A stretch of DNA of 64,000 bases from Asterias rubens. Taxonomy: Eukaryota. Positions 24,408-51,573 of the stretch are shown here, piece by piece. The position numbers and the translations under genes are program-made. Position 1 is the stretch's first letter, and each line of letters opens with the position of its first letter. The stretch lies in the NCBI RefSeq assembly GCF_902459465.1, contig NC_047064.1:21080001-21144000 (forward strand). The letters run 5' to 3'. Below the pieces are notes generated by a model. It was given only the letters and a program-made list of their open reading frames with translations. It ran no database searches and had not been told where the DNA came from.

Positions 24408-26056
24408 ATGAATTTCAAAGCCAACGTGTTAATGTTTGTGACGTTCTCCTTCGCGGTTGTGTACATCTTTATTGCATGTAAGTATGTTTACCTTATGGGT
24501 GGGGGTACGGTCATTGATGACAACCATAGTATGATATGCAAAGGCAGGAAGCAATGTCTAAACAGTTGTTTCAGTATTTTACTGAGCCAAGTTTTCATCT
24601 AAAAAAACAGTAGAGGTAACCTTTGAGAATAATGTTGGTTTGATATTATCTGAATTACTAAATTTAAAGTTTTGTCTTTTTTTCCCCTATATAAATAAAT
24701 AGGCCCTTTATATCTCTTCCACTCATCAGCACTCATCAGTCTCCTGACAATGACTAGAGCAAGCTAGTCGAAACGTTGAGACCAATATTAAGAACTCACT
24801 CCGCGGTAGTGAAGTTGTTAACGATCCACTAAAAGCTAAAGTAGTAGTCCCAGCCGATTTTCTACCTTCCACCCCAGGTAGTGGTTAAAAAGCAGGATAG
24901 TTCTTTTCAGAGCTGAGAAGTCTCCCGAATACCGAAAACCTTCTACGCGGTAGAAAAATATAAAGCAAGACAAGTTCTCAAAAGAACATAATCTAACTGG
25001 CGAGTAGATGCACATGGTGTCACCGCAAACTAAAATACATATACTGTTTTACTTCCCTTAGTTTCGACAGCACGAATAAATGCCACGTGTGTTGATACCC
25101 CCTCTTGGAAGTCAGATGCGTACAAAGTTGACACAAACCTACGAATTGAAGCTACGTATAACCAGTTTCAACCTACAAAAACCGACAACGGCGTTATGAT
25201 AAATCAGCTAGCACTGGGCTCTCCGGCAGGTCATGATGCCTCGACCCGGCTATCTCCCGGGGATGGGGATGGGGGTAGTTCCCCGGAGCCGTACCAGTGC
25301 ACCGCATCGGATCTTCAGAGGCGATCCGGCACCATCCTTCTGACCACCACCAATTCTGCTTATTTGGACTTCACAGAAAATTGGCTTGAGAGCATCAGGC
25401 GCACGAGAGCCTGCCCTAATATATCGGTGGTTACTGAAGATGACCAAGCGTTTAATTACCTCTCCAATAAGACAATGGCCGGACTGAATGTCTTGAAGAC
25501 TCAGACTGCTAAGTCAACAACTGGAAAGCTCGTCTTCAATACCAAAGAGTACAAGAAGTTCGTCAATAAGAGACAGGGGTATATCTTAGATCTACTGGAA
25601 CAGGGCTGGGAGGTTCTGTTCAGCGATGTGGACACTTTCTGGCTACGGGATCCGTTTCTATTTTTCCAGGGGAACTTTGACATGGCACTTGAGGAAGATA
25701 ACCATAAACCAGCCTCATACTGTGCCGGGTTTGTCTACTTTCGACCAACCGAACGAACCATGCAGTTTGTCAAGGAGTGGATCCGGTTTATGGCCAACGA
25801 CAAGACCATGAAGCCGGATCAAGTGGTTATGAATATCATGATCCGGCGAAAAGTGATAGCCGGATTGAAGCTCCGGGTTCTTGACTCCAATAAATTTCCG
25901 AATGGGAAATTATTTTTCGATGACGAATGGAGGAAGGACAAAAAGGACTTTGTTGTCGTGCATAACAACTGGATTGTCGGACACGATCCGAAAGTTGAAC
26001 GGTTCCGAAACTGCAGTATGTGGCTCGTTGATCACAACGAAATCAAGTCTATGTGA
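24408..26056 (+). CDS. nucleotide-diphospho-sugar transferase (PF03407/GT77-like), copy 1, 354 aa
   Basis: Exon 24408-24477 (MNFKANVLMFVTFSFAVVYIFIA, TM anchor, GTAAGT phase 1) + exon 25062-26056. Motifs LDFTENW, LFSDVDTFWLRDP (DxD), YCAGFVY, DQVVMN, FPNG, VVHNNW match my recollection of RGXT/MGP4-type enzymes. Confidence 0.88.
24739..25030 (+). mobile_element. retrozyme/Penelope-derived remnant headed by a minimal hammerhead (24739-24782); copies at 34590 and 44020
   Basis: gtctc-CTGACAA-t-gactag-agcaag-ctagtc-GAAACGTT-gagac: perfect stem I (5 bp) and stem II (6 bp), core has A instead of G8. Extent of the element beyond the ribozyme is approximate. Confidence 0.55.
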
Positions 26057-26414
26057 TCCGGTGTGGCAGGAGGTTCTGTCCCCCAGATATTTTGCTCCCA
26101 CGGCGAACTGTGTACAATGTACTTTACTTCTCATAGCGCCCTCTTTTGAAACACCCTCCTTCACAGGCCACATTATTTTCCCATTTTGGGGGACATAATC
26201 TCCGGTGGACCGATTTCCCTGGGACACCCGGAACTCGTTTTTTTTGTTAGAACTCATCCACAAAGTGCTTTCACTATGATATATAAATTGTTAACACTTC
26301 ATCAATTCATATCAACTCATCAGGGTAGAATTATTACACATTATTATTATACACATAATTTCGGGCTACGACGAAACAAAATTCTTTCCAAGATGGTAAA
26401 CAAAAAAAGTCACC

Positions 26415-26536
26415 ATGCTGCAACTCTGACTTCATCGGAAGGTTAGCATGCCTTTTCGTGTGCTATACGGTTAAATGGAAATCGCACAGTTAGCACAAAA
26501 TCTGCTGCTGGGGCACTGAAGTCAGAGTTGCAGCAT
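26415..26536. mobile_element. 122-bp mini-MITE with perfect 20-bp TIR
   Basis: atgctgcaactctgacttca ... tgaagtcagagttgcagcat. Confidence 0.7.
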
Positions 26537-28502
26537 ACTGAACAAATTGTTCTTGAGATTTTCTCAGAAAGTTACTATGCATTAATTTGTTGTTCAAGAT
26601 TCATCACAGGGGGTTAAAGTAAGACTGCATAAGTTTGTGATCTACTAAAGAAAGGCAGACAGCTTCTCCATCTCAACCTTGATGTAATCTCTAACTGGGA
26701 TCACTAATAATCACAGTGGTGCACCCGAAAGGGGGGGTGGGGGACGATGGGTCTGGGGGATTGATCCCAGCCCCTCCAAGGTATTCAATTTGTTTGTTTG
26801 ATTTGTTTAGATTTTTTGTTTTTCGGGGAAAATATGGCCCACCCCCAAAAAATAATAAATCCTGGGTGTGTCACTGCTGATAGTTTAAATTCTGATTCTG
26901 GTTAAACCACATCAGCCCTCAACAAGAAACAAATCGCAAACCATGAACACTTTAAGTAACTTTAGAAACAGAAGAGTGAGGTTTGTTGGTGGGTTTATTA
27001 TGTAAAGTATATAAATTGACTAGTTTGTGACCTAACAACTGTACAAAAATGGTAATAAAATTGTAAATTTTGAAGAGCCCAGTTGTTTCTTGGTTGATTG
27101 ATTATTTTGTTGATTTTTGGAATGATGCGTTATTTAAAAAATTGGGTCAAAGGTCACGATAACATATTAAAGATCATAGTGACTTGTACAAAAATAGTCA
27201 TAAACTTGTAAATTTTGAAGAGCCCAACTGTTTCATAGTGGATTCTGATAGAGGAAGACATGCTCTATCAACTGATTTTTATGTCGTTGATTTTTGGAAT
27301 GATACATTATTTCAAAAACGGGGTCAAATGTCACGATAACATATTAAAGATTACAGTGACCTACATTTCAGAAAATTATTATTGATAAAAGAATTGATTT
27401 GAGCGTGCAATTGTCATCATTTTGATACCAAATTTGCATATGTGTGATGAGAATTGACATGGTTATGACATATTTTTACCAAAAGGTGGTATTTTACCCA
27501 AAAAATGTCAGATTTTAGTGGTTTCTGCCCTGACCACATGGTAAGTCCGATCGGGCTAAAAATTGCTGTGCATTCATTGCTCATAAGGACCTACAATCAC
27601 AGCAATTTATATCAAAATCGGAAGACATGAGGTAAAAAAGTGCGTTGGTCTGACATGGAATGACCCATATGTGTTTTGTGTTTTGTGTCGTACAAAAAGT
27701 ACCCATTCGATAAGGGTGGTTACAATTTAAACCATGTATTTTGATTTGACAGTAATAGCACCAACAATAATGTTGTTCCTGTTTTCAGACCAATCGATCT
27801 TTCTTTTCTTTTTTCTTTTTTCTTGTTATCGCCTCCCGTCCTTTGACGCCCTTAGACTCAACTTTGCTAGCATGTTTTTGATTGACTTAACGTACAAGTA
27901 ATACAAAACAAATCTTTAAAAAAAAAAAAAAAAAAAATTAAAATAGTATAAAATAAACAACAAACTAACAATGTTCATTTCAATCGTTTTCATTTAAAAA
28001 GAGAAAAATGTGGGAAAACGCTTCATATAATAATAAGTGATACCCAATCTACGTTTTCTGGCTTCATCTAGCGTCCTTTCTTTAATGATAACACACGGAG
28101 GAAGAAAAAAGAATAAACTTTTTCCTCCATGCAATAACCATAATATGGGCTAGGTATGCCTACCAATTATACCTCCATGCTAGTCTTGGTGCAATACGTT
28201 AGTATTCACTATCACTCAACTATCGAAGAACGCCTTGCACCCAGACTACCTCCATGCATTGAGCAAGGAACCCCAAGATCCAGAAAAGTGGACCAGACGT
28301 GGATGTGGCTTAATGGCGGATTGACGGTGGTCAATATACAAACATTGACACATACCAGTTGGTTTCGCCCTTCTTCCTCCATGGCTTCGCCAACTTTAGA
28401 ATGGGGGGCGCTATTTGCATCACTTAATAGCGATTACGTAATGTCTTTCAAGGCGAAGGTACACATTCATTCTATTCAGCTAGCTGTACAAGGCCTTCAT
28501 GC

Positions 28503-29226
28503 CAAAGATTAAAGAGCACCGCAAGGCACAGGATGCGGAACTGAAGCTTTATCTATTGTTGGAACGTGAAATACGCATGGGCGCCATTTCAGCAAGTGAA
28601 TGTTTTGTTTCCCATTGATAGGAAAGGTCATTGTCTGCACTGAACTGCACTGATCTATTGTTGTTACTTGCCGAAATGGGTCCTACTACTTGCCGTCAAC
28701 TCGCCGTCAACTCACTTGTGCCGTCAACTCGCCGTCAACTCCTCCAATATACATTTAAAATCCACAAAAGAAGCATAGAACGGTGACTTATCAGCTAAAA
28801 GAGAACTTGCGTAAGTTTTAGGTCGTATTTCGGAATAAAAATTGAGTTTTTTTTCTTGTGAAAAAATTATCTCGAAGCAGCAAAACCGTCGGCCGCCATC
28901 GTGCTTTTTATATGGATTAATCTTGGCCCAAGATGTCAATGATTGGTACTTTTTTTATCAACACAAAGTCGTTTTTGTGAATAAATTTGTACCGAAAACC
29001 ATGAGAAATATGTAGTTCAGCCCAGACTTAACACTTCCGTGCCCCATTTATAAATTTTTCAAGTAAATTTAATGAGTTGACGGCACGAAAATGATTTGAC
29101 GGCGAGTTGACGGCAAGTCGGCGAGTTGACGGCAAGTAGTAGGACCGGCCGAAATGGCATCCAGTGGGATTTCACATTTCAGCCCGAGTTCCGCATCTTG
29201 CGCCTTGCGGCGCTCTATAATCTTTG
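28503..29226. mobile_element. foldback MITE (CA..TG termini, 8-bp TSD; hAT- or P-type) hosting a nested element
   Basis: TSD cttcatgc at 28495-28502 and 29227-29234; 40-bp TIR 36/40; empty site present at 38651 and 48079. Confidence 0.9.
28679..29146. mobile_element. nested MITE (GG..CC termini, 9-10-bp TSD; Merlin- or MuDR-type)
   Basis: Perfect 28-bp TIR ggtcctactacttgccgtcaactcgccg; subterminal gccgtcaact repeats; gccgaaatg duplicated at 28670-28678 and 29148-29156. Confidence 0.9.
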
Positions 29227-29555
29227 CTTCATGCTACTGAGTTGTATTGCATTAACAACATACAGAGCAGCAGGGACCAATAGTCGTTGTCACTTGTGAG
29301 ACAATCTACTTCATTCCTTGACGAGTATTACATGTTTAAAAAAAGATCATCGTATGGTGTCCATTTAACACTTGCTGTGTCTTGTAGTTGGCTTCGTTTG
29401 TTGCTAGAGTCATTTAATTATATCAAAGATACAGTGTATTGGGCTGTGCATTCACGCAGCAACCGTACACGAAGACAACCATTTGAATGCTTACCGATCC
29501 AAAGGGAAAGGGAGAAACTGCAGAATTTGATGAAAGTAAGTATACAAACGCAAAG

Positions 29556-29561
29556 GTAAGT
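29556..29561 (+). promoter_or_regulatory. consensus 5' splice donor of a putative non-coding first exon (repeated at 38982 and 48410)
   Basis: AAG|GTAAGT plus a second AAA|GTAAGT at 29536; each downstream GT gene has an acceptor immediately before its ATG and so needs an upstream exon. Confidence 0.35.
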
Positions 29562-30078
29562 CGAGCTTCTATCAATGTTATGTAATAGATCAAACTTGAA
29601 CTTAACATTTGGGTTGATCAACGAGGAAATTTCCGTATCCTGCCACCACTTTGTCATTTTGATATGAAATAAATTAGTGAGAAAATAGAAGTAGCTGTTG
29701 CAAACTGCGTCCCAACCAAAGGATGGTATAAAAATACATAATGGCCTGTCGACGTTTTGACTTATTTATACCCATGCTTTAGCCATGGAGGCTACCTCCA
29801 TGCTTTTAGCACAGGCTTTCTCGAAGGCTAAATGAGAACACAACAAACATGAACAGAAAATCAGTGAAACAGAAATACCTGAATAGAGAGAGAGAGTAAT
29901 AGAGAAATGAGTATAGTTTTATTTTAAAAGGAGATCCTTTTTGTAAAAATTAGTGGGAAAGTGGTGGCAGGATACGGAACTTTTCCCAATTAACTGGCAA
30001 CCATTTCCAGGCAATCTCCAAGAAAGTGATTTTATTTCAGCTGCATCATTGAGGGCGCTGTAGTCACAAGGGTTTTAA

Positions 30079-30282
30079 AGGCAGTGGACACTATCGGTAA
30101 CTGTCAAAGACTAGCCTTATAACAAACCTGTGAAAATTTGAGCTCAACCGGTCATCGAACTTGCGAGCGGAAAAAACACCCTTGTCACACGAAGTTGTGT
30201 GCGTTTAGATGGTTGATTTCGAAACCTCAAGTTCTAAATCTGAGGTCTCGAAATCAAATTCGTGGTAAATTACTTCTTTCTC
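30079..30282 (+). mobile_element. MITE family A truncated at the duplication junction (also 39507-39711; continuing copy 48936-49217)
   Basis: ttaa|aggcagtggacactatcggtaactg ... ttacttctttctc joined directly to gggccattgg. Confidence 0.8.
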
Positions 30283-30685
30283 GGGCCATTGGTCAATACT
30301 GTTTACCGATGTTGTGCGATTGCTGTAAGACTGTGGTTATGCGTAATGATTTGGAAAGTTTTTTAATTTCAGTGCCTCTGTTGTGATGTGTTTTGTTGTC
30401 ATTTTAGCCTGTAAGAAACACTCATTTAAACCATGGAGGTAGAAACAGTTAAGGTTTCTTGCTCATAGCAAGTAATCTTGGTAACAGGTTTCATCGTGCT
30501 CAAGAACTACAGTGATTAAAAGTTGACTTATGTGGCGTGGCATCCTTGTCTTCATCACCAATAATAACTGTTTTCCGAGATAAAACAATCCGAGTATAAT
30601 AAATAAATAACTAGACATTAGGTGTTTGTGAACAAACACAAAGCTGTTCCGTGTTCTTTTGCTTTGATTATGTGTTAACATTACC

Positions 30686-31160
30686 AAGGAGTCTATAACT
30701 GAAAAAAAGTTTGAAAAATACTGTACAGTGTCTTGAGTTACGGTGCCACCATGGGGTCGCGGTAACCTAAGGCTAATCTCTAACGCCCAAGGAGTCTGTA
30801 TCTGAAAAAAAGTTAGAAAATCGGTTGTGTAGTTCTTGATATATGGTGCCACTTCTGGTTGACCCGGAAGTAGAGGTCAACTTGGGGTCATGGATTTTCA
30901 AAGTTTATTTTTAATGCCTTAGGAGGATAAAACTGAACAAACAGGATTGAAAATCGGTTGTATAGTACTTTGCGTATGGTCCCACTTCCGGTTCACCCGG
31001 ACGTAGAGGCCAACATGGGGTCACGAGTTTTCACAGTCAATATTAATGTCAAGGAGTCTGTAAGTGAAAACAAATTGAAAATCGGTTGAGTAGTTCTTGA
31101 GATATGGTCCCACTTCCGGTTGACCCGGAAGTAGAGGTCAAATTGAGGTCACGGTTTTTC
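30686..31160. repeat. about 130-bp degenerate tandem repeat x4, three units carrying an acttccgg/ccggaagt-type hairpin
   Basis: Units start near 30689, 30789, 30921, 31051; also present in unit 3. Confidence 0.7.
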
Positions 31161-31183
31161 CAAATTTTTCCAAACTACAAACA

Positions 31184-31582
31184 GTCGACATTCTTAAAGA
31201 AGAATGTCGCTTCCTGTGATAATTTATCTCGGAATGTCGACATCCTAAAAGTAGGATGTCGTCTTCCTGTGATAATTTATCTCGGGATGTCGACATCCTA
31301 AAAGTAGGATGTCGTCTTGCTGTGATAATTTATCTCGGTATGTTGACATCCTAAACGTCAGTTGTCATCTTCCTGTGATAATTTATCTCGGGAAGTCGAC
31401 ATTCTAAAAGAAGAATGTCGTCTTCCTGTGATAATTTATCTCGGAATGTCGATATCCCAAAAGTAGGATGTCGTCTTGCTGTGATAATTTATCTCGGGAA
31501 GTCGACATCCTAAAATTAGGATGTCGTCTTCCTGTGATAACTTATCTCGGGAATTAAGTTGACATCCCGAAAGTAGGATTTC
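31184..31582. repeat. 53-bp hairpin minisatellite, about 7.5 copies
   Basis: Units at 31184, 31236, 31289, 31342, 31395, 31448, 31501, 31558; consensus gtcgacatcctaaaagtaggatgtcgtcttcctgtgataatttatctcgggat. Confidence 0.9.
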
Positions 31583-32199
31583 TTTTGTTGAAAGGATTTT
31601 ACTTGTATACGTTTTGTTAACTAGTATTACATTTCCAACAATATTTATAATATTCATGGTCATAAACTACGTTAAACTAAAATAATGGACGAAACAAAAT
31701 GTCCCACGTAAAACTCCATAAGGTTTGGAACATAATGGTCCCGCAAGTTCAAATACACGCGAGACTTGCTTAGTCTACACAGAAGGTAATAAATAATTTA
31801 TTACAAGCAAATGCAATCGTACAATAATAGAAAACAAAAACTAAAAATCAATGCAAAACACATGTAGGGGATGGAGGGGCCCATACAAAGCAAACCTTAA
31901 CGAGTACGGACCCCTCCCCCTTTTTTTGTAACGAAGAAAGCAATGTAAGCAATTCTATTTAGTGGGTGTAATCTTATGTAGCGGCAAAACAATTCAAAAT
32001 TACAGGAAGAACAAACACAAAAACAGTTAGCGTAAATTAAAACTTAACAATTTATTTAAATGAAACAGATAAACAAAATACCCAAAATAAATACTAGAGA
32101 AATTGGGCCCCACAACTCTTGCTGGGAAAAAAACCATGTCGAAATATACCATTGTTATCCATGAGAGACGTTTTGTAGTCACCTTGGTTGGGGAGCGAG

Positions 32200-32534
32200 G
32201 ACGATTGCACTTTTGGTATTGTCATTGTTAAACTCCGGTTCCATTGTGTGCTGTATGTTTACCCTCAACGCATAGATTTTCTTGTGAATAGTAGCTGTGT
32301 ATGATTCATGGTTCGCTGAATAATGTGGCGATAACAAACTTTTATCCTTTTGATCACCATCAGCCCCATGTATAATAAACTTCAACTGCTGACGATTGCA
32401 CTTTTGGTATTGTCATTGTTAAACTCCGGTTCCATTGTGTGCTGTCTGTTACCCTCCATGCAAATAGATTTTCTTGTGAATAGTAGCTGTGTATGATTCA
32501 TGGTTCGCTGAATAATGTGGCAATAACAAACTTT
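32200..32534. repeat. direct duplication of about 143 bp, period 191
   Basis: gacgattgcacttttggtattgtc...aataacaaacttt at 32200 and 32391. Confidence 0.85.
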
Positions 32535-33200
32535 CATCATTTTGAACTGAATGCTTGATTTATTATCTAGAGGTCAATGCTTGAGGCCAGTAAGAGTATT
32601 GTGCACGTACACCATGTAGTTTTTGTTGGAAACCGTTTGCTAACAGCCATTTATGTTACCCTTTGAAATAAAATCAGAAAATTTATAAGTTTGCTTGTTG
32701 CATAAAATTAAATTGAAGATGATGCCTGAATTGATTTTTTCAATCAGAGTTGGACTCTAGACTGACGTGTTGGACTCCTTGAACACTCCAAGTGGTTCAA
32801 TAGGTAGTGAAATTCCAATACTTATGCTGATGTTCTCATGATGTCAGCATCAACAGGAAGTTCCAACAACTTTGTCCCCTTGTACAATTAAATATGCAAA
32901 TATGGGTCACGTGGTTAATTAATTACGATGTTTAATTTTTTTGGGGGTCGGTGGTTTGATGTTTGATCTAGTACAAGTTGATTTCACAGAACTCTTAACC
33001 ACCAAACTCTGCGCTTATGATCACCATTTTTCGCTTACTGTGTTTTTAAACATCATCGTGTCATGCATGCACACAGGTTATGTTGGGCTAACATTTGAGA
33101 AAAAGAAAAGGCAACACTATCGATATAAAGATAAGAATCAAACTTAAATATTACAAAAAGAAATATATTTTTAGTTTTGGGGGATAAAACAATATTGATT

Positions 33201-33270
33201 TCTGACGGAGATTCGAACTCGCAATTCTCAAATGTGTAGTCGCGACTGATGACCACTAGGCTAGAAGGGC
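33201..33270 (-). mobile_element. tRNA-like SINE head (copy at about 42631-42702)
   Basis: Minus strand A-box TAGCCTAGTGG and B-box GAGTTCGAATC; acceptor stem does not pair, so not a functional tRNA. Confidence 0.5.
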
Positions 33271-33435
33271 ACGATGTAAAAATGGTGGGTTTTTACATGT
33301 GTGCATCAACAGAGGGGATTATGATCCGGCGAAATAATTCTCGTTTCATGATTTTGCGACCATTGTCACTAAATATGAACTGCTAACGCCTATAACTATT
33401 AAGTAGGGTTGAAATGTAGTATTAGATGCCTTAAG

Positions 33436-33474
33436 GGGGTTTTTGACGACGACGTCGATGTCGTCAAAAACCCC
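33436..33474. repeat. perfect 15-bp inverted repeat, 9-nt loop
   Basis: ggggtttttgacgac-gacgtcgat-gtcgtcaaaaacccc. Confidence 0.85.
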
Positions 33475-34258
33475 TATCTAATTACGCACGTTCGTTTTAA
33501 CGAAAACCCATGCACAGAGTAATTGGTCCAGAACGCGGTTATAAAAACAACGACAAATTTAACGCACGTTCTAACGAAAATCCTAAACCTCCGTACGTTG
33601 TGCGTGTACAGAGTAATGTGTCCAGAACGCAGGTAGGAAACAAAATAGTATAGACTCCTCTCAAGAAGTCAACAACTCATCGAGGTACATACTGTGTTGT
33701 ATTACCGAAGAGAATGTTTCACAATAACATGAAAGTGACTGCATCAAGTTTACAAATTAAAAATTCAAATGAAGACCACGTGGTTAATTAATTAAGAACG
33801 TTAACACTTTTTTATTAGAGTAAAGCTTATGTTCTAAGCTTCAATTTGATATATGATTTAACTCTTTTATCCTTATACTTTAGGAGACGGAGCCTGAACA
33901 AAAATGCTGTACAAACGCAATGGGGTTTTAGGCGGAAACAAAGAATAATAATAATAATAAAAATAATAAAAATCTCGACGAAAACAATACCTGTTCCGAC
34001 GGTAGGTCGGAACAGCGAAATAGTAATCCGAGAGAAAAAAAATTATCTGTTGCAAAAACTGACCACCAACCGAAAGGACCTATAAATTAATGCTACAGAC
34101 TTCATTCCAGTCTCAGTGATGTCATGGTCCGGGCAGAAGTGCGCCCACCCCCCCCCCCCCCCCCCCACCCAACCTCTAGGGTTGAAAAGTCAGGCAGTAT
34201 AAGCAGATTCATATTCTTACCGTAAATATTATTGGGGATCTGTTTCTTTCTTCACAGC

Positions 34259-35856
34259 ATGCATTTCAAAGCCAACGTGTTAATGTTTGTGACGTACTCC
34301 TTAGCGGTTGTGTACATCTTTATTGCATGTAAGTATGTTTACCTTATGGGTGGGGGTACGGTCATTGATGACAACCATAGTATGATATGCAAAGGCAGGA
34401 AGCAATGTCTAAACAGTTGTTTCAGTATTTTACTGAGCCAAGTTTTCATCTAAAAAAACAGTAGAGGTAACCTTTGAGAATAATGTTGGTTTGATATTAT
34501 CTGAATTACTAAATTTAAAGTTTTGTCTTTTTTCCCCCTATATAAATAAATAGGCCCTTTATATCTCTTCCACTCATCAGCACTCATCAGTCTCCTGACA
34601 ATGACTAGAGCAAGCTAGTCGAAACGTTGAGACCAATATTAAGAACTCACTCCGCGGTAGTGAAGTTATTAACGATCCACTAAAAGCTAAAGTAGTAGTC
34701 CCAGCCGATTTTCTACCTTCCACCCCAGGTAGTGGTTAAAAAGCAGGATAGTTCTTTTCAGAGCTGAGAAGTCTCCCGAATACCGAAAACCTTCTACGCG
34801 GTAGAAAAATAAAAAGCAAGACAAGTTCTCAACAGAACATAATCTTACTGACGAGTAGATGCACATGGTGATACCGCAAACTAAAATACATATACTGTTT
34901 TACTTCCCTTAGTTTCGACAACACGAAAGAAAACCACGTGTGTTGATACCCCCTCTTTGAAGTCAGATGCGTACAAAGTTGACACAAACCTACGAATTGA
35001 AGCTACGTATAACCAGTTTCAACCGACAAAAACCTCGACCCGGCTATCTCCCGGGGATGGGGATGGGGATGGGGGTGGTTCCCCGGAGCCGTACCAGTGC
35101 ACCGCATCGGATCTTCAGAGGAGATCCGGCACCATCCTTCTGACCACCACCAATTCTGCTTATTTGGACTTCACAGAAAATTGGCTTGAGAGCATCAGGC
35201 GCACGAGAGCCTGCCCTAATATATCGGTGGTTACTGAAGATGACCAAGCGTTTAATTATCTCTCCAATAAGACAATGGCCGGACTGAATGTCTTGATGAC
35301 TCAGACTGCTAAGTCAACAACTGGAAAGCTCGTCTTCAATACCAAAGAGTACAAGAAGTTCGTCAATAAGAGACAGGGGTATATCTTAGATCTACTGGAA
35401 CAGGGCTGGGAGGTTCTGTTCAGCGATGTGGACACTTTCTGGCTACGGGATCCGTTTCTATTTTTCCAGGGGAACTTTGACATGGCACTTGAGGAAGATA
35501 ACCATGAACCAGCCTCATACTGTGCCGGGTTTGTCTACTTTCGACCAACCGAACGAACCATGCAGTTTGTCAAGGAGTGGATCCGGTTTATGGCCAACGA
35601 CAAGACCATGAAGCCGGATCAAGTGGTTATGAATATCATGATCCGGCGAAAAGTGATAGCCGGATTGAAGCTCCGGGTTCTTGACTCCAATAAATTTCCG
35701 AATGGGAAATTATTTTTCGATGACGAATGGAGGAAGGACAAAAAGGACTTTGTTGTCGTGCATAACAACTGGATTGTCGGACACGATCCGAAAGTTGAAC
35801 GGTTCCGAAACTGCAGTATGTGGCTCGTTGATCACAAAGAATTCAAGTCTATGTGA
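34259..35856 (+). CDS. nucleotide-diphospho-sugar transferase (PF03407/GT77-like), copy 2, 337 aa
   Basis: Exons 34259-34328 and 34913-35856, phase 1, intact ORF with the same motifs as copy 1. Confidence 0.88.
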
Positions 35857-36686
35857 TCCGGTGTGGCAGGAGGTTCTGTTCCCCAAATATTTTGCTCCCA
35901 CGGCGAACTGTGTACTTTACTTCTCATAGCGCCCTCTTTTGAAACACCCTCCTTCACAGGCCACATTATTTTCCCATTTTGGGGGACATAATCTCCGGTG
36001 GACCGATTTCCCTGGGACACCCGGAACTCGTTTTTTTTGTTAGAACTCATCCACAAAGTGCTTTCACTATGATATATAAATTGTTAACACTTCATCAATT
36101 CATATCAACTCATCAGGGTAGAATTATTACACATTATTATTATACACATAATTTCGGGCTACGACGAAACAAAATTCTTTCCAAGCTGAGATGGTTTGAG
36201 AACTGAATTAACGCACGATGACCAGGGGGGAATAATGTTGGAAGTGCTTTGAGATGCCCTATGGGTGTGAAAAGCACTCCATAAAAACTGGTTATTACTA
36301 TTATGGGTTGATGCAGGTTTGATTTTGATATTCAGCTGCAGCTACAACACAATAAATCAAATACTTGTGGATTTCAATTTGTTACTATGATGTCTAAAAA
36401 TGCCCTACAGTAATTGATCATGCATGCACATTCACAAACCAAATCAAATCAGGATACAAACACGGTTGTATTCGTTTTAAATTATTTATTCATATTATCC
36501 AAATTTATTTATTATAAATTATTTATATGTAAAATATAATTTGTTAAAATTATACATATTTAGACTTTAAGATTAAAGGTGGAATAAATTATCTTTGTTA
36601 AAAAATATGTGCAAGTAATACACTAATAAATTTGTTTTTAAAGATGCATTGTCATAGTTTGGTCAAAATTTAAGGTCACAAATTAA

Positions 36687-36888
36687 AGGGGCTATCTCAT
36701 CTGTCCTGCGGCTGTGCATGGAAATATTAACTGATGAACCCACCACATGATAATTTACATCCCAGGCATGGACATGCCCTTCCAGGATGTAGATGCGAGG
36801 GTGCCCAGGGTGTAGGTCACCAAGTGGTGGGTTCATCATTAGTTTATATAGTGCCATGCACAACTGCAGGACAGGCGAGATAGCCCCT
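36687..36888. mobile_element. foldback MITE, about 60-bp imperfect TIRs (copy 46116-46317)
   Basis: ttaa|aggggctatctc...gaacccaccac / gtggtgggttc...gagatagcccct. Confidence 0.7.
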
Positions 36889-37579: not shown

Positions 37580-37711
37580 TCCGGATTACTCCTAGAACTA
37601 TTTCGGTTTCATCTGCTATCGTCTCCAGTAACGGGAGACGATAGCAGACGAAACCGCAATATGGGAGACGATAGCAGACGAAACCGCAATAGTTCTAGGA
37701 GTACATCCGGA
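37580..37711. repeat. about 47-bp inverted repeat with a 30-bp tandem duplication of the inner right arm (copy 47009-47140)
   Basis: tccggattactcctagaactatttcggtttcatctgctatcgtctcc ... (gggagacgatagcagacgaaaccgcaata)x2 gttctaggagtacatccgga. Confidence 0.8.
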
Positions 37712-40615: not shown

Positions 40616-41014
40616 GTCGACATTCTTAAAGAAGAATGTCGTCTTCCTGTGATAATTTATCTCGGAATGTCGACATCCTAAAAGTAGGATGTCGTCTTCC
40701 TGTGATAATTTATCTCGGGATGTCGACATCCTAAAAGTAGGATGTCGTCTTGCTGTGATAATTTATCTCGGTATGTCGACATCCTAAACGTCAGTTGTCA
40801 TCTTCCTGTGATAATTTATCTCGGGAAGTCGACATTCTAAAAGAAGAATGTCGTCTTCCTGTGATAATTTATCTCGGAATGTCGATATCCCAAAAGTAGG
40901 ATGTCGTCTTGCTGTGATAATTTATCTCGGGAAGTCGACATCCTAAAATTAGGATGTCGTCTTCCTGTGATAACTTATCTCGGGAATTAAGTTGACATCC
41001 CGAAAGTAGGATTT
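40616..41014. repeat. 53-bp hairpin minisatellite, unit-3 copy
   Basis: Same array as 31184-31582. Confidence 0.9.
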
Positions 41015-43688
41015 CTTTTGTTGAAAGGATTTTACTTGTATACGTTTTGTTAACTAGTATTACATTTCCAACAATATTTATAATATTCATGGTCATAAAC
41101 TACGTTAAACTAAAATAATGGACGAAACAAAATGTCCCACGTAAAACTCCATAAGGTTTGGAACATAATGGTCCCGCAAGTTCAAATACACGCGAGACTT
41201 GCTTAGTCTACACAGAAGGTAATAAATAATTTATTACAAGCAAATGCAATCGTACAATAATAGAAAACAAAAACTAAAAATCAATGCAAAACACATGTAG
41301 GGGATGGAGGGGCCCATAAAAAGCAAACCTTAACGAGTACGGACCCCCTCCCCCCTTTTTTTGTAACGAAGAAAGCAATGTAAGCAATTCTATTTAGTGG
41401 GTGTAATCTTATGTAGCGGCAAAACAATTCAAAATTACAGGAAGAACAAACACAAAAACAGTTAGCGTAAAATAAAACTTAACCATATATTTAAATGAAA
41501 CAGATAAACAAAATACCCAAAATAAATACTAGAGAAATTGGGCCCCACAACTCTTGCTGGGAAAAAAACCATGTCGAAATATACCATTGTTATCCATTAG
41601 AGACGTTTTGTAGTCACCTTGGTTGGGGAGCGAGGATGATTGCACTTTTGGTATTGTCATTGTTAAACTCCGGTTCCATTGTGTGCTGTATGTTTACCCT
41701 CAACGCATAGATTTTCTTGTGAATAGTAGCTGTGTATGATTCATGGTTCGCTGAATAATGTGGCGATAACAAACTTTTATCCTTTTGATCACCATCAGCC
41801 CCATGTATAATAAACTTCAACTGCTGACGATTGCACTTTTGGTATTGTCATTGTTAAACTCCGGTTCCATTGTGTGCTGTCTGTTACCCTCCACACATAG
41901 ATTTTCTTGTGAATAGTAGCTGTGTATGATTCATGGTTCGCTGAATAATGTGGCAATAACAAACTTTAATCATTTTGAAAAGAATGCTTGATTTATTATC
42001 TAGAGGTCAATGCTTGAGGCCAGTAAGAGTATTGTGCACGTACACCATGTAGTTTTTGTTGGAAACCGTTTGCTAACAGCCATTTATGTTACCCTTTGAA
42101 ATAAAATCAGAAAATTTATAAGTTTGCTTGTTGCATAAAATTAAATTGAAGATGATGCCTGAATTGATTTTTTCAATCAGAGTTGGACTCTAGACTGACG
42201 TGTTGGACTCCTTGAACACTCCAAGTGGTTCAATAGGTAGTGCAATTCCAATACTTATGCTGATGTTCTCATGATGTCAGCATCAACAGGAAGTTCCAAC
42301 AACTTTGTCCCCTTGTACAATTAAATATGCAAATATGGGTCACGTGGTTAATTAATTACGATGTTTAATTTTTTTGGGGGTCGGTGGTTTGATGTTTGAT
42401 CTAGTACAAGTTGATTTCACAGAACTCTTAACCACCAAACTCTGCGCTTATGATCACCATTTTTCGCTTACTGTGTTTTTAAACATCATCGTGTCATGCA
42501 TGCACACAGGTTATGTTGGGCTAACATTTGAGAAAAAGAAAAGGCAACACTATCGATATAAAGATAAGAATCAAACTTAAATATTACAAAAAGAAATATA
42601 TTTGTAGTTTTGGGGGATAAAAAAATATTGATTTCTGACGGAGATTCGAACTCGCAATTCTCAGATGTGTAGTCGCGACTGATGACCACTAGGCTAGAAG
42701 GGCACGATGTAAAAATGGTGGGTTTTTACATGTGTGCATCAACAGAGGGGATTATGATCCGGCGAAATAATTCTCGTTTCATGATTTTGCGACCATTGTC
42801 ACTAAATATGAACTGCTAACGCCTATAACTATTAAGTAGGGTTGAAATGTAGTATTAGATGCCTTAAGGGGGTTTTTGACGACGACGTCGATGTCGTCAA
42901 AAACCCCTATCTAATTACGCACGTTCGTTTTAACGAAAAACCATGCACAGAGTAATTGGTCCAGAACGCGGTTATAAAAACAACGACAAATTTAACGCAC
43001 GTTCTAACGAAAATCCTAAACCTCCGTACGTTGTGCGTGTACAGAGTAATGTGTCCAGAACGCAGGTAGGAAACAAAATAGTATAGACTCCTCTCAAGAA
43101 GTCAACAACTCATCGAGGTACATACTGTGTTGTATTACCGAAGAGAATGTTTCACAATAACATGAAAGTGACTGCATCAAGTTTACAAATTAAAAATTCA
43201 AATGAAGACCACGTGGTTAATTAATTAAGAATGTTAACAATTTTTTATTAGAGTAAAGCTTATGTTCTAAGCTTCAATTTGATATATGATTTAACTATTT
43301 TATCCTTATACTTTAGGAGACGGAGCCTGAACAAAAATGCTGTACAAACGCAATGGGGTTTTAGGCGGAAACAAAGAATAATAATAATAATAAAAATAAT
43401 AAAAATCTCGACGAAAACAATACCTGTTCCGACGGTAGGTCGGAACAGCTAAATAGTAATCCGAGAGAAAAAAAATTATCTGTTTCAAAAACTGACCACC
43501 AACCGAAAGGACCTATAAATTAATGCTAAAGACTTCATTCCAGTCTCAGTGATGTCATGGTCCGGGCAGAAGTGCCCCCACCCCCCCCCCCCCCCCACCC
43601 AACCTCTAGGGTTGAAAAGTCAGGCAGTATAAGCAGATTCATATTCTTACCGTAAATATTATTGGGGATCTGTTTCTTTCTTGACAGC

Positions 43689-45285
43689 ATGCATTTCAAA
43701 GCCAACGTGTTAATGTTTGTGACGTACTCCTTAGCGGTTGTGTACATCTTTATTGCATGTAAGTATGTTTACCTTATGGGTGGGGGTACGGTCATTGATG
43801 ACAACCATAATGTGATATGCAAAGGCAGGAAGCAATGTCTAAACAGCTGTTTCAGTATTTTACTGAGCCAAGTTTTCATCTAAAAAAACAGTAGAGGTAA
43901 CCTTTGAGAATAATGTTGGTTGATATTATCTGAATTACTAAATTTAAAGTTTTGTCTTTTTTCCCCCTATATAAATAAATATGCCCTTTAATATCTCTTC
44001 CACTCATCAGCACTCATCAGTCTCCTGACAATGACTAGAGCAAGCTAGTCGAAACGTTGAGACCAATATTAAGAACTCACTCCGCGGTAGTGAAGTTATT
44101 AACGATCCACTAAAAGCTAAAGTAGTAGTCCCAGCCGATTTTCTACCTTCCACCCCAGGTAGTGGTTAAAAAGCAGGATAGTTCTTTTCAGAGCTGAGAA
44201 GTCTCCCGAATACCGAAAACCTTCTACGCGGTAGAAAAATAAAAAGCAAGACACGTTCTCAACAGAACATAATCTTACTGACGAGTAGATGCACATGGTG
44301 TTACCGCAAACTAAAATACATATACTGTTTTACTTCCCTTAGTTTCGACAACACGAAAGAAAACCACGTGTGTTGATACCCCCTCTTTGAAGTCAGATGC
44401 GTACAAAGTTGACACAAACCTACGAATTGAAGCTACGTATAACCAGTTTCAACCGACAAAAACCTCGACCCGGCTATCTCCCGGGGATGGGGATGGGGAT
44501 GGGGGTGGTTCCCCGGAGCCGTACCAGTGCACCGCATCGGATCTTCAGAGGAGATCCGGCACCATCCTTCTGACCACCACCAATTCTGCTTATTTGGACT
44601 TCACAGAAAATTGGCTTGAGAGCATCAGGCGCACGAGAGCCTGCCCTAATATATCGGTGGTTACTGAAGATGACCAAGCGTTTAATTATCTCTCCAATAA
44701 GACAATGGCCGGACTGAATGTCTTGATGACTCAGACTGCTAAGTCAACAACTGGAAAGCTCGTCTTCAATACCAAAGAGTACAAGAAGTTCGTCAATAAG
44801 AGACAGGGGTATATCTTAGATCTACTGGAACAGGGCTGGGAGGTTCTGTTCAGCGATGTGGACACTTTCTGGCTACGGGATCCGTTTCTATTTTTCCAGG
44901 GGAACTTTGACATGGCACTTGAGGAAGATAACCATGAACCAGCCTCATACTGTGCCGGGTTTGTCTACTTTCGACCAACCGAACGAACCATGCAGTTTGT
45001 CAAGGAGTGGATCCGGTTTATGGCCAACGACAAGACCATGAAGCCGGATCAAGTGGTAATGAATATCATGATCCGGCGAAAAGTGATAGCCGGATTGAAG
45101 CTCCGGGTTCTTGACTCCAATAAATTTCCGAATGGGAAATTATTTTCGATGACGAATGGAGGAAGGACAAAAAGGACTTTGTTGTCGTGCATAACAACTG
45201 GATTGTCGGACACGATCCGAAAGTTGAACGGTTCCGAAACTGCAGTATGTGGCTCGTTGATCACAAAGAATTCAAGTCTATGTGA
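43689..45285 (+). pseudogene. GT77-like copy 3 with a -1 frameshift (or sequencing error)
   Basis: Exons 43689-43758 and 44343-45285; ttatttttcgat of copies 1/2 reads ttattttcgat at about 45143-45146; the shifted frame ends at 45358 and loses VVHNNW. Confidence 0.75.
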
Positions 45286-48200
45286 TCCGGTGTGGCAGGA
45301 GGTTCTGTCCCCCAAATATTTTGCTCCCACGGCGAACTGTGTACTTTACTTCTCATAGCGCCCTCTTTTGAAACACCCTCCTTCACAGGCCACATTATTT
45401 TCCCATTTTGGGGGACATAATCTCCGGTGGACCGATTTCCCTGGGACACCCGGAACTCGTTTTTTTTGTTAGAACTCATCCACAAAGTGCTTTCACTATG
45501 ATATATAAATTGTTAACACTTCATCAATTCATATCAACTCATCAGGGTAGAATTATTACACATTATTATTATACACATAATTTCGGGCTACGACGAAACA
45601 AAATTCTTTCCAAGCTGAGATGGTTTGAGAACTGAATTAACGCACGATGACCAGGGGGGAATAATGTTGGAAGTGCTTTGAGATGCCCTATGGGTGTGAA
45701 AAGCACTCCATAAAAACTGGTTATTACTATTATGGGTTGATGCAGGTTTGATTTTGATATTCAGCTGCAGCTACAACACAATAAATCAAATACTTGTGGA
45801 TTTCAATTTGTTACTATGATGTCTAAAAATGCCCTACAGTAATTGATCATGCATGCACATTCACAAACCAAATCAAATCAGGATACAAACACGGTTGTAT
45901 TCGTTTTAAATTATTTATTCATATTATCCAAATTTATTTATTATAAATTATTTATATGTAAAATATAATTTGTTAAAATTATACATATTTAGACTTTAAG
46001 ATTAAAGGTGGAATAAATTATCTTTGTTAAAAAATATGTGCAAGTAATACACTAATAAATTTGTTTTTAAAGATGCATTGTCATAGTTTGGTCAAAATTT
46101 AAGGTCACAAATTAAAGGGGCTATCTCATCTGTCCTGCGGCTGTGCATGGAAATATTAACTGATAAACCCACCACATGATAATTTACATCCCAGGCATGG
46201 ACATGCCCTTCCAGGATGTAGATGCGAGGGTGCCCAGGGTGTAGGTCACCAAGTGGTGGGTTCATCATTAGTTTATATAGTGCCATGCACAACTGCAGGA
46301 CAGGCGAGATAGCCCCTCTCAATGTGGTACATTGCTATTTGGTAGGGGTAGGAAAAGTTATCAACTTTCATATGATACATTGATCATTGAATGGTTCTTC
46401 GCCATCAAAATTGAATACGAAATTGCTTGTTAACAAGTTAGTTTTATGCTAACAATTAGTTTGAGTAAGTACCGATAGTACCGATAGTGTCCAGTGCCTT
46501 TAACCTCTCTGAGGAACAAATGTATTTAAAACATATTATTGTCCTATATTTTGCTAAAAAACTGTACATTTATTTGAACTGTTTCAAAAAATGAAATTAA
46601 TATTTTTGTGCACACAGCTTGATCTCATTGTTGGACCTTCTTTATTGTTGTTCCCGCCTGATGTTCATGTTATTTTCGTTTTCTGAAGGTGACTGTTTCT
46701 GTAACTGTAAATTGTTTCTCAAGTCGCCATGGTTACTGAAGCAAACTTAAAGTGTTTGTTTTTTTACAATGAAAACTCGGAAAGATCATGACTGGGAAGT
46801 GGTGTGAGTCAAATGGCTTAATACTAAAGGGTTCATGGATGAAAACCGTTATTTTGCTTACACACATTATTTTCATTCATAGATGAAATTGAAAATAAAT
46901 AATTGTGAATAGGCAGTCGTTGGGAGATGATCTGTTTATATATTATTTATTGGGGTGACCTTGCCCGAGGATGACATTTTCGTGGGCAAGTAAGCTAGAT
47001 TACCATCATCCGGATTACTCCTAGAACTATTTCGGTTTCATCTGCTATCGTCTCCAGTAACGGGAGACGATAGCAGACGAAACCGCAATATGGGAGACGA
47101 TAGCAGACGAAACCGCAATAGTTCTAGGAGTACATCCGGATATGGAGTGATTGTCCACAGTATGTATAATTTGGCCGGTGGGGCGAGTTTGCTTAAGGAC
47201 ACTTTTTTATTTATTTTTTTATTTTTATGAATGACAGCATTGAAATAAATGTTACTGAATTGAATTACCAAAATATGTGATTGTGAACTGAACAAATTAC
47301 CATTCCCCTGATCTACATTTGGACCGCTATCAATTTGCAATTCAACTGCAATTATATTTCATAATAAAACCGCAATGGCTCAATATAAAAAAAAAATAAC
47401 AACGTACTAAGTAACTACTCAACTAGGCTAAAGTAACACTAACAGTAACAGTGGTCCGGTATAAATATGTGTAGGTCCCTACGTATTTTTCACGCTGTTC
47501 CCCAAAATATCAGAGATAGGCCCTATGCCTAGTTTGAAATTAAAAACAGTTTAAATAAAATTACAAATTTAAAATGCCCGCTTGCCTAAGTTAAAAGTTT
47601 AATAAAGAACGTCAACAAGGTCAACGTGACAGAGAGGCTTACCCTGCCATGCATACACACAGTTGCGCAGAACCACATATCCAGTTGTTTTAATCACAAC
47701 CCAAGCACTCACAACTGTCATCGCTGACTACTGAATCTGAAATTCTGCACGAAATTACTGTACGATTCTATAGCGACTTGTTTGTACTGTAGTATTAGTT
47801 GTAAGCCCAAAGTCTCCATGTACTGTCAAGCGACATTTTATAAAGTAACTTGCCAACCAGAAACTGCGCATGCGCTGGTTTCGCCCAAATATTTGTAAAC
47901 AAAAGAAAGGTCTATATACAAACATTGACACATACCAGTTGGTTTCGCCCTTCTTCCTCCATGGTTTAGCCAACTGTAGAATGGGGGGCGCTATTTGCAT
48001 CACTATTATTATAGTGATTACGTAATGGCTTTCATGGCGACGGTACACATTCATTCTATTCAGCTAGCTGTACAAGGCCTTCATGCTACTGAGTTGTATT
48101 GCATTAACAACATACAGAGCAGCAGGGACCAATAGTCGAACTGTCACTTGTAAGACAATCTACTTCATTCCTTGACGAGTATTACATGTTTAAAAAAAAT

Positions 48201-49644
48201 CATCTTATGGTGTCCATTGAACACTTGCTGTGTCTTGTAGTTGGCTTCGTTTGTTGCTAGGGTCATTTAATTATATCACAGATACAGTGTATTGGGCTGT
48301 GCATTCACGCAGCAACCGTACACGAAGACAACCATTTTGAATGCTTACCGATCCAAAGGGAAAGGGAGAAACTGCAGAATTTGATGATAGTAAGTATACA
48401 AACGCAAAGGTAAGTCGAGCTTCTATCAATGTTATGTAATAGATCAAACTTGAACTTAACACTTGGGGTGATCAACGAGGAAATTTCCGTATCCTGCCAC
48501 CACTTTGTCATTTTGATATGAAATAAATTGGTGAGAAAATAGAAGTAGCTGTTGCAAACTGCTTCCCAACCAAAGGATGGTATAAAAATACATAATGGCC
48601 TGTCGACGTTTTGACTTATTTATACCCATGCTTTAGCCATGGAGGCTACCTCCATGCTTTTAGCACAGGCTTTCTCGAAGGCTAAATGAGAACACAACAA
48701 ACATGAACAGAAAATCAGTGAAGCAGAAATACCTGAATAGAGAGAGAGAGTAATAGAGAAATGAGTATAGTTTTACTTTACAATGAGATATTCCTTTTTG
48801 TAAAAATTAGTGGAAAAGTGGTGGCCGGATACGGAACTTTTCCCAATTAACTGGCAACCATTTCCAGGCAATCTCCAAGAAAGTGATTTTATTTCAGCTG
48901 CATCATTGAGGGCGCTGTAGCCACAAGGGTTTTAAAGGCAGTGGACACTATCGGTAACTGTCAAAGACTAGCCTTATAACAAACCTGTGAAAATTTGAGC
49001 TCAATCGGTCATCGAACTTGCGAGCGGAAAAAAACACCCTTGTCACACGAAGTTGTGTGCGTTTAGATGGTTGATTTCGGTTGATTACTTCTTTCTCAAA
49101 AACTATGTCACTTCAGAGGGAACCGTTTCTCACAATGTTTTATACCATCTATACCTCTCCCCATTACTCGTCACCAAGTATAAGGTTTTTATGCTTATAA
49201 TTATTTTTAGTAATTACAAATCTCGTATTATTTCATCGACGTTTACTGTGTTTTTTTATCGCGATTTTTTTGTTCGTGGTATGTGCCTTTTTTATGTCCC
49301 GTTCGGTTCCTTCCTGAGTGAACAGTGGCTGCCAAGCCACTTTATGCAACGGCGACATACACAATACTTTGATTGGAACCAGCCCCCCCCACCCCCCCCC
49401 CCCCCCCGAGACAATTTTTTTATAAATAAATAGAAAATAAAATAACAAAATATGTGTCCTGAAATCTTATGCTGAGAAGCATGCCTCTTTATTATTGCAG
49501 GCATAAGGAGACAATTTTAAGCATTATTCTAAAACTTTTGAGTTTTGTTTCTCAAGCTAATTTTTTTATCACAATGAATGAAAAGACACATTGGATAGGT
49601 CACCACATATGAATATATTACTTTGTTTATCCCTTTATTAGATC

Positions 49645-51573
49645 ATGCTGATTTTCACCTGTCGGCGCTGGAATGGAAGACAGCTCGCCATCTTGGTTGT
49701 GGCGGCAAGTATAGGATTAGTGGCGTGGTCCGGTAAGGAAATCCAACCAACGAAACCCCTAAATATTATTATAATCATAAATTTAGAATCAGCTTGCAGG
49801 TCTGATACTTTACAGTGGCTTTGGATACAGAGGCAATGAAGGCGATTGCATCCATGCCCCCTGGTCATTTCCTTGGTGCCCTTGAAATGCTCCAGTAGAA
49901 ATTTACGTTCCTTATGTTGCCCTTGCCCGTTCAAAGACGAAGTATACAGGCCTGACCTTATCAACAAAATTTTGCTTGTGTTTAAAGACAGTGGACACTA
50001 TTGGTAATTGTCAAAGACCAGTCTTCTCACTTGGTGTATCTCAACATATGCATCAAATAACAAACCTGTGAAAATTGGAGCTCAATCGGTCGCAGAAGTT
50101 GCGCGATAATAATGAAAGAAAAAACACCCTTGTCACACGAAGTTGTGTGCTTTCTGATGCTTGATTTCGAGACCTCAAGTTCTAAACTTGAGGTCTCGAA
50201 ATCAAATTCGTGGAAAATTACTTCTTTCTCGAAAACTACATCACTTCAGAGGGAGCTGTTTTTTTACAATGTTTTATACTGTAAACCTCTCCCCATTACT
50301 CGTAATCAAGAAAGGTTTTATGCTAATAATTATTTTGAGTAATTACCAATAGTGTCCACTGCCTTTAAATCTTGTGCAATAAAAAGGAGGTATAAGGACG
50401 CAAAGTTTATTTATCCAAACGAATTCTTCAGATGAACATTTTTTAGTCGCAGTATTTTTATAACAAAAACTCAATCACCAAATGCTATTTTCTTATCTGA
50501 TAGTTCAATGTTCAATCAATCTTACAGGCTGGAAACACCACGCTGACATAATGTACCGAATGAAACGATTGAAAGACTTTGACCCCACGTTTTTAGTACG
50601 GTTTGTTGAGGCACCGAAGTTACCGGGCGTGCGAGCCACACCAAGCCCCTTGCAGGATATTATTGCAGTTACTCATCTGATAACTCAAATTTCAATCCCT
50701 CCTACAGGCTGGAAACGCCACAATGAGCAAATGAACCGAATGAAACGGTTGAAAGACTTCGACCCCACATTAGTACGGTTTGTTGAGGCACCGAAGTTAC
50801 CGGGCGTAGGAGCGACTCAGAGCCCCTGGCAGGATGCCGTCTCAGACCCACGCCCAGTCGTCCTCGCAACCACGAACAAAGCCTTCTTGGACTTCACTGA
50901 AAACTGGTTGGAAAGCATCAAGCGAGTGGGCACTAAGCCACGGATTCTAGTCGTAGCCGAAGACGAAGAAACGCAGCGGTTTCTCTACGGGAGACCGGAC
51001 GTCCACGTGGTGATTTCAGAGGGTTTCAAAATACCCGCTCACAAACTGGAGTGGGACTCACCTATCTACAACGCTATGGTGAACAAGCGGCCGGCTTACA
51101 TCTATCAACTCCTAGAAAAAGGACACCATGTGCTCTTTAGTGACGTTGACACTGTGTGGTTGAAGGAACCATTCCAGTTTCTTGATGGTGAGTTTGACAT
51201 AGCAGTAGAAGAAGACCAACACAAACCGTACATCGCTTACTGCGCAGGGTTCGTCTACTTTAGGTGTACAGAAAAGACCAAAGAGTTCGTAAAGGAATGG
51301 CTCCGCCGATTGCACGAATCACAGACTAGTATCTCAGATCAGGTGATTATGAATAAAATGCTGATCGAAGAGAAGCTCCCAGGATTAAGAAAGAAAGTGA
51401 TGTCATCCCAGATTTTCCCGAATGGCAAACTTTACTTTGCTAATTCTCAGTTTTATGAGAACCACCACGAGAAAGCGGCTGTAGTGCATAATAATTGGGT
51501 ACAGAGCAAGGAGGTCAAACTGCAACGGTTCAAAGCAAACAATTTGTGGTTCGTTGAAGACAGAGAAGGGTAA
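49645..51573 (+). CDS. nucleotide-diphospho-sugar transferase (PF03407/GT77-like), divergent paralog 4, 317 or 377 aa
   Basis: Exon 49645-49732 (MLIFTCRRWNGRQLAILVVAASIGLVAWS, TM, phase 1) + exon from 50528 or 50708 to 51573; motifs FLDFTENW, LFSDVDTVWL, YCAGFVY, DQVIMN, FPNG, VVHNNW. Confidence 0.88.
49986..50364 (+). mobile_element. MITE family A, full length with intact TTAA TSDs, in paralog-4 intron
   Basis: ttaa|agacagtggacactattggtaatt ... aattaccaatagtgtccactgcct|ttaa. Confidence 0.9.

Follow-up and report, generated by a model that had tools for sequence, protein, structure and literature searches.

In this study, we analysed a 64,000-nucleotide stretch of the Asterias rubens genome (hereafter, the window) and found evidence for a conserved sea-star locus in which one of two neighbouring GT77-type glycosyltransferase genes has been amplified to three copies. 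The three near-identical tandem copies were designated as GT77a copies 1 to 3, and the fourth gene as GT77b. The four genes together span exactly 24408-51573, from the ATG of copy 1 to the stop codon of GT77b. Their products are predicted to be retaining GT77 transferases of the Golgi. We put the probability of this reading, a conserved locus with GT77a amplified in A. rubens and encoding such enzymes, at about 0.8.

Two A. rubens RefSeq proteins matched the window at 100% identity in a tblastn search, which identifies the window as A. rubens. The asteroid host supposed in a sequence-only reading of this DNA was thus confirmed by a BLAST species check. No runs of N were found in the window. 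Four long open reading frames are present on the + strand (25196-26056, 34957-35856, 44387-45358 and 50482-51573), and all four genes matched the Pfam family PF03407 (Nucleotid_trans, the CAZy GT77 domain) with E-values of 8e-38 to 5e-32 and scores of 112-131 bits, well above the curated cut-off of 22 bits. The same reading had proposed four tandem type-II PF03407-like genes, consisting of a triplication and one old paralog. Both proposals held, the second with the correction that the assembled copy 3 carries a one-base deletion. Gene models for copy 2 (XP_033624313/XP_033624314) and GT77b (XP_033624959/XP_033624960) are already in RefSeq, with names transferred automatically. XP_033624314.1 ('...xylosyltransferase 1-like isoform X2') maps to copy 2, and to copy 3 until the frame change, and XP_033624960.1 ('3-like isoform X2') maps to GT77b. 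The coding exons are as follows, with a slash marking the splice junction here and below.

24408..24477, + strand: GT77a copy 1 exon 1; signal-anchor helix MNFKANVLMFVTFSFAVVYIFIA, donor GCAT/GTAAGT (tblastn and splice context).
25062..26056, + strand: GT77a copy 1 exon 2; frame intact, PF03407 at E 8.4e-38, tblastn match of 97% with no gap (homolog residues 33-361).
34259..34328, + strand: GT77a copy 2 exon 1; anchor, XP_033624314.1 residues 1-23 at 100%.
34913..35856, + strand: GT77a copy 2 exon 2; exact match to XP_033624314.1 (residues 25-337 at 100%).
43689..43758, + strand: GT77a copy 3 exon 1; XP_033624314.1 residues 1-23 at 100%.
44343..45282, + strand: GT77a copy 3 exon 2; same as copy 2 until a one-base deletion, then shifted in frame.
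49636..49732, + strand: GT77b exon 1 with the anchor; XP_033624960.1 residues 3-33 at 100%, and splice context.
50708..51573, + strand: GT77b exon 2 with the catalytic domain; XP_033624960.1 residues 32-320 at 99.7%, PF03407 at E 3.8e-33.

Each gene has two coding exons, a small one with the N-terminal membrane anchor and a large one with the stem and the GT-A catalytic domain. In GT77a, exon 1 is 70 nt long, holds the ATG and the hydrophobic signal anchor (MHFKANVLMFVTYSLAVVYIFIAF in copy 2), and ends at the donor GCAT/GTAAGT. Exon 2, of about 0.95 kb, begins at the acceptor CCCTTAG/TTTCG and covers the stem together with the entire catalytic domain. The anchor exons are bounded by canonical GT/AG splice sites, and the intron phase, phase 1, is conserved. 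Exon 2 of copy 1 has a 51-nt insert in the stem, which is also found in Asterias amurensis.

The fold of the copy 2 protein was predicted with AlphaFold2. The model (predicted local distance difference test score, pLDDT, 87.9) shows a compact alpha/beta domain, whose Rossmann-like core starts at residue 97, preceded by an N-terminal helix (residues 2-26) and a disordered stem (residues 39-69). Together with the exon 1 sequence, it gives the short tail, single anchor helix and stem of a type II membrane protein. Copy 2 has the DxD motif D195-V-D197 as well as H307 and K317. In an alignment of 82 homologs, N113, D197, P204, H307 and K317 were invariant, and D195 was nearly so.

The top 11 structural matches of the model in Swiss-Prot were all Arabidopsis or Dictyostelium proteins bearing GT77 enzyme names. 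The best reviewed matches were, in order, RGXT1, RGXT2, MGP4 and RGXT3 (E 3e-21 to 5e-19, 25-26% identity), followed by XEG113, RAY1 and RRA1-3 (E 1e-14 to 1e-17, 17-23% identity) and, further down, by Dictyostelium AgtA (E 2.4e-12, 20% identity). Lower structural matches were of the GT8 type, from vertebrates and others (GLT8D1, GXYLT1/2, LARGE, glycogenin). The vertebrate matches in Swiss-Prot were of this type, and none was a GT77 protein, in line with the earlier statement that vertebrates have no known GT77 member. Solved structures matched by the model were retaining GT-A enzymes of families GT8 and GT6, namely GlyE, glycogenin, Gat1, ABO and alpha-3-GalT, and a sequence search of the solved structures in the Protein Data Bank found no relative at E-values up to 1. 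A full HMMER scan gave hits to 2629 cluster representatives, one of them an MGP4 ortholog from a plant (E 6e-25, 32% identity). These results indicate that membership of the four proteins in GT77 is well supported.

The nearest characterised relatives resemble the A. rubens proteins to different degrees. Arabidopsis RGXT1-3 and MGP4 share with them PF03407, a length of about 340-380 residues, the type II order of anchor, stem and GT-A domain, the DxD motif and the C-terminal His. However, these are plant enzymes, whereas the A. rubens proteins are about one-quarter identical to them and fall in animal clades with lineage-specific expansions. Animals, to our knowledge, make no pectin. The plant proteins RRA1-3, XEG113 and RAY1 have the same family and fold and are likewise Golgi type II proteins, but they use another sugar and linkage, and their similarity is lower (17-23%). 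AgtA, which acts on Skp1, is a GT77 enzyme making Gal-alpha-1,3-Fuc (galactose on fucose), a linkage also present in the sea star egg-jelly glycan ARIS (acrosome reaction-inducing substance), but it is cytoplasmic and more distant than the RGXTs. AgtA has also been reported to lack a membrane anchor and to carry a WD40 propeller (PMC8724618). The sequence-only reading had described characterised GT77 members as adding a sugar alpha-1,3 to fucose. This description fits RGXT and AgtA, but not the family as a whole, which also includes the arabinofuranosyltransferases RRA1-3, XEG113 and RAY1.

We next describe the repeat array that carries the GT77a copies. Self-comparison of the window revealed a tandem array of 2.6 units with a period of about 9.43-9.85 kb and 97-99.9% identity between units.

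24168..34017, + strand: repeat unit U1; contains GT77a copy 1, the 5' exon of the gene that follows and 3.4 kb of filler (self-blastn offsets 9794-9851 and 9424; repeat families D1-D14).
34018..43449, + strand: repeat unit U2; 10,440-nt alignment at 99.17%, offset 9424.
43450..49079, + strand: repeat unit U3, truncated; stops where the unique sequence before GT77b starts.

The middle segment of U2 and U3 is 99.88% identical. In a 1.45-kb comparison around exon 2, divergence was 1.7% between copies 1 and 2 and 0.3% between copies 2 and 3. The segment 3' of the gene, about 2.8 kb long in U1 (26393-29226), is unlike that of U2 and U3 (36186-38650 and 45615-48078) except for about 170 nt. Part of the U1 segment is common to all three units of A. 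amurensis, which argues that the replacement or insertion in U2 and U3 predates their own duplication. Besides the GT77a gene, each unit carries an alternative 5' exon.

29332..29555, + strand: alternative 5' exon in U1; XP_033624313 (isoform X1) residues 1-74 at 100%, donor AAAG/GTAAGT.
38758..38981, + strand: alternative 5' exon in U2, upstream of copy 3; same donor context, inside the 99% alignment of U1 and U2.
48186..48409, + strand: alternative 5' exon in U3; part of the GT77b isoform X1 (XP_033624959.1, residues 1-24 at 96%).

The donor AAAG/GTAAGT is common to the three 5' exon copies, and each of them splices into the next GT77 gene downstream, that is, copy 2, copy 3 or GT77b. The U1 exon spliced to exon 1 of copy 2 gives the RefSeq isoform X1 of 412 residues. 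The units follow the order gene part, filler, gene part, filler, gene part, an alternation for which unequal crossing-over between two earlier copies is the expected source. Such a crossing-over would most likely have made the array, and gene conversion or repeated re-duplication may then keep the copies alike. The 5' exon now found in each unit would originally have belonged to the downstream gene and would have become joined to whichever GT77 gene follows. The duplication thereby gave the new GT77a copies the upstream exon of GT77b, and probably its promoter too.

RNA data showed that GT77a transcripts are spliced. A 1821-nt RNA contig of run X9 consists of 47938-48407, then 73 unplaced letters, then 44343-45614, and the unplaced letters fit exon 1 (about 70 nt). 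The contig can thus be read as an upstream 5' exon followed by the two coding exons, with exon 2 starting exactly at its predicted acceptor, 44343. Since the 5' exon of each unit lies 3' of the GT77a gene of that unit, the contig shows that at least two units are truly in tandem. Exon 2 was assembled almost whole in at least eight small run assemblies from at least six studies. Its RNA depth was low: in two runs of about 12 million reads each, sites were covered by about 2-5 reads.

Copy 3 has lost one T from a run of five at 45139-45142 compared with copies 1 and 2, as seen in the alignment and in the tblastn frame change at 45136-45145. The frame shifts after ...NGKLF, and the last 48 or so residues are lost, so that copy 3 as assembled is without H307 and K317. 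The five-T form was present in the DNA contig of run X2, the only one of that run, and in the RNA contig of run X9. Among raw RNA reads, five T were read in 3 of 5 (run X24) and 4 of 5 (run X30), leaving the four-T form in 3 of 10. The presence of the four-T form in raw reads means that some real molecule carries it, and the lesion of copy 3 is probably real and transcribed. A second difference lies at 45058, where the assembled copy 3 alone has A and copies 1 and 2 have T. All seven raw RNA reads and both contigs have T at this site, and the A is possibly a consensus error in a near-identical repeat.

We compared the locus with that of other sea stars. The order MREG (- strand), GT77a, GT77b, SLC34 is kept in A. 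amurensis, Acanthaster planci and Patiria miniata. A. amurensis (CP134956.1) has MREG on the - strand, three GT77a genes (362, 371 and 351 residues, the last flagged 'LOW QUALITY'), GT77b (317 residues) and SLC34. A single GT77a occupies this position in both Acanthaster planci and Patiria miniata. The amplification is therefore confined to the two Asterias genomes among those compared. The pair of GT77a and GT77b, with its neighbours, is therefore ancestral among sea stars.

In the copy tree, the six Asterias genes cluster by species, as (rub1,(rub2,rub3)) and (amuC,(amuA,amuB)), with support of 100/99 for the species grouping. Copies of A. rubens are 0.3-1.7% apart and those of A. amurensis 2-3%, whereas the distance from one species to the other is 2.8-3.5%. 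This pattern suggests either a shared array with gene conversion or independent duplication in each species. The number of synonymous (0-4) and non-synonymous (0-9) differences per pair gave dN/dS ratios (non-synonymous to synonymous rates) of 0-2.4, counts that are too few to carry weight. A. amurensis copy C (about 10001-11546 of the extracted A. amurensis locus) reads ...MWLV and then a stop, with only the last 8 residues lost. One of the three GT77a copies is thus lesioned in each Asterias species, and the two lesions differ.

GT77b has about 44% protein identity to the other three genes. In a tree of 35 proteins, its clade includes sea-urchin orthologs (support 100/99), which identifies it as the old paralog. 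GT77a fell in a clade of 14 proteins, all from sea stars (support 99/97), although sampling in this tree was limited. The A. rubens genome holds 10 PF03407 loci, and the family is present in all echinoderm classes sampled. A word-based protein search returned echinoderm proteins only, with A. amurensis (98%) and A. rubens (97%) at the top, and a second such search with a divergent sea-urchin member as query again returned only echinoderms. The spread of the family beyond echinoderms is taken from papers rather than from sequence searches: automatic RGXT-like annotations appear in annelid, clam and sea-cucumber papers, and in the annelid Alvinella the family has expanded to 31 members, alongside carbohydrate sulfotransferases (PMC12403961). 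Recent horizontal transfer was considered as a source of the genes and rejected, since paralogs are numerous in all echinoderm classes sampled and both the phase-1 intron and the synteny are conserved.

The proteins are best read as type II Golgi membrane proteins with a GT-A domain, in which the DxD motif would serve as the site for metal and nucleotide sugar and the C-terminal His is invariant. On the grounds of family membership, they are predicted to be retaining enzymes that take a sugar (xylose, galactose or arabinose) from its uridine diphosphate (UDP) form and attach it through an alpha linkage to an acceptor glycan inside the Golgi. If they resemble the RGXTs in this respect, the acceptor could be the 3-OH of L-fucose. 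Several points weigh against our reading of the locus and its products. In the literature mentioning GT77, RGXT or AgtA, we found no enzymatic, functional or tissue work on any animal GT77. Identity to RGXT is only about 26%, and the arabinofuranosyltransferases within GT77 mean that donor, acceptor and linkage could differ from those of RGXT and AgtA. U2 and U3 differ by only 0.1-0.3%, which is compatible with a haplotype wrongly placed in tandem. An assembly artefact would mean that U3 and U2 are haplotypes laid in tandem, that the frameshift of copy 3 is a homopolymer error, and that there are two real GT77a copies. The small difference between the units agrees with this, as do the finding of only the five-T form in the X2 DNA contig and the X9 RNA contig, and the absence of the private A at 45058 from the seven RNA reads and both contigs. 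However, contig sets can lose minority variants, and the four-T form was recovered in 3 of 10 raw reads from two runs. In addition, three copies are likewise present in A. amurensis, whose genome was assembled independently, and the A. rubens region is without gaps. We therefore consider an artefact unlikely and retain three GT77a copies in A. rubens.

The glycan that the enzymes build can be read in more than one way. They may decorate other glycans, such as the N- and O-glycans of secreted mucins and adhesives, or glycolipids, with arabinose transfer as one version; we give this reading even odds. Starfish gangliosides have been reported to contain arabinose. The arabinosyltransferases RRA1-3, XEG113 and RAY1 do match the copy 2 model, but less closely than the RGXTs do (identity of 17-23%, compared with 25-26%). 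The spread of the family over all sampled echinoderm classes points the same way, and the 31 Alvinella members found alongside carbohydrate sulfotransferases suggest a role in general extracellular glycan diversity of marine invertebrates (PMC12403961). A starfish family member, the Acanthaster '3-like' protein gbr.125.52, which may correspond to any of the paralogs, is listed in an expression supplement and probably belongs there to Table S1.2, on genes up-regulated in oral somatic tissues. Against this reading, no glycan structure was linked to the GT77a or GT77b genes in this analysis. The other possibility is that GT77a and/or GT77b is the UDP-Gal:fucoside alpha-1,3-galactosyltransferase for the Gal-alpha-1,3-Fuc of ARIS, with amplification tuning ARIS output or gamete recognition, which we regard as highly improbable. 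ARIS fragment 1 is [4)-beta-Xyl-(1-3)-alpha-Gal-(1-3)-alpha-Fuc4S-(1-3)-alpha-Fuc4S-(1-4)-alpha-Fuc-(1-], and Gal-(1-3)-Fuc is present in fragment 2 as well, according to a review (PMC3528131) that agrees with the alpha-D-Gal-(1->3)-alpha-L-Fuc plus Xyl given in the sequence-only reading. Exactly this Gal-alpha-1,3-Fuc linkage is made by the GT77 member AgtA, as its Swiss-Prot name states. Formation of alpha-Gal from UDP-alpha-Gal requires a retaining enzyme, and alpha-L-Fuc and beta-Xyl require inverting ones. From this chemistry, alpha-Gal would be the only linkage of the repeat that fits a retaining UDP-sugar transferase, and Gal-alpha-1,3-Fuc the one ARIS step plausible for a GT77 enzyme. 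The GT77a clade is made up of sea-star proteins as far as it was sampled, GT77a is amplified in Asterias, the genus whose ARIS has been solved, and not in Acanthaster or Patiria, and we found no paper naming an ARIS glycosyltransferase, as had been stated earlier. On the other side, exon 2 has a depth of only about 2-5 in the two RNA runs, and its recovery in at least eight assemblies from at least six studies, if these are transcriptomes, suggests broad rather than gonad-restricted expression. Any of the 10 paralogs, or an enzyme of another family, could perform the step, and the closest characterised relatives are xylosyltransferases, not AgtA. The family also occurs in every sampled echinoderm class and is annotated in annelid, clam and sea-cucumber papers, and gbr.125.52 is probably listed among genes up-regulated in oral somatic tissues.

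Taken by itself, the cluster is an ordinary case of lineage-specific tandem expansion, in a glycosyltransferase family that is annotated but uncharacterised. In the literature that we found, no GT77 enzyme of an animal has an assigned function. The echinoderm egg-jelly glycans that set off the acrosome reaction of sperm have solved structures but are genetically orphan. The locus offers a short and concrete list of candidates, a conserved gene pair present as one copy each in Patiria miniata, a laboratory species. The ARIS interpretation is a legitimate candidate-gene proposal and an unsupported one. In its fullest form, GT77a would be the galactosyltransferase adding Gal to the sulfated fucose of ARIS, and the three-copy array specific to Asterias, made uniform by gene conversion and with one copy being shed, would reflect selection on glycan output or specificity; we hold this to be very doubtful. 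If true, a function would be assigned to an animal GT77 for the first time, and the enzyme would also be the first one known for a sperm-activating glycan of echinoderms. The array is also a tidy example of unequal crossing-over that carries the 5' exon of a neighbour along. In the literature, we found no description of the three-copy array, the shared 5' exons or the copy 3 lesion.

Several further features were observed in the region. A partial in-frame duplicate of the stem and acceptor region of GT77b lies at about 50443-50667, just upstream of exon 2, with 55% identity to XP_033624960.1 residues 3-78. The filler contains a minisatellite with a 53-bp period and 6-7 units, in U1 (31104-31668) and U2 (40484-41101). 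A dispersed repeat of about 390 nt is present in three copies that are 86-88% identical (6336-6717, 49977-50368 and 55656-56047). One of these is found a short distance before exon 2 of GT77b, and A. amurensis has related copies at the same places. At 48872-49250, RNA-read depth was very high (about 1100-2500 per strand) and depth in DNA contigs was also high, with many opposite-strand joints around 48957-49180. This segment is probably an abundant, transcribed, hairpin-forming repeat at the end of U3.

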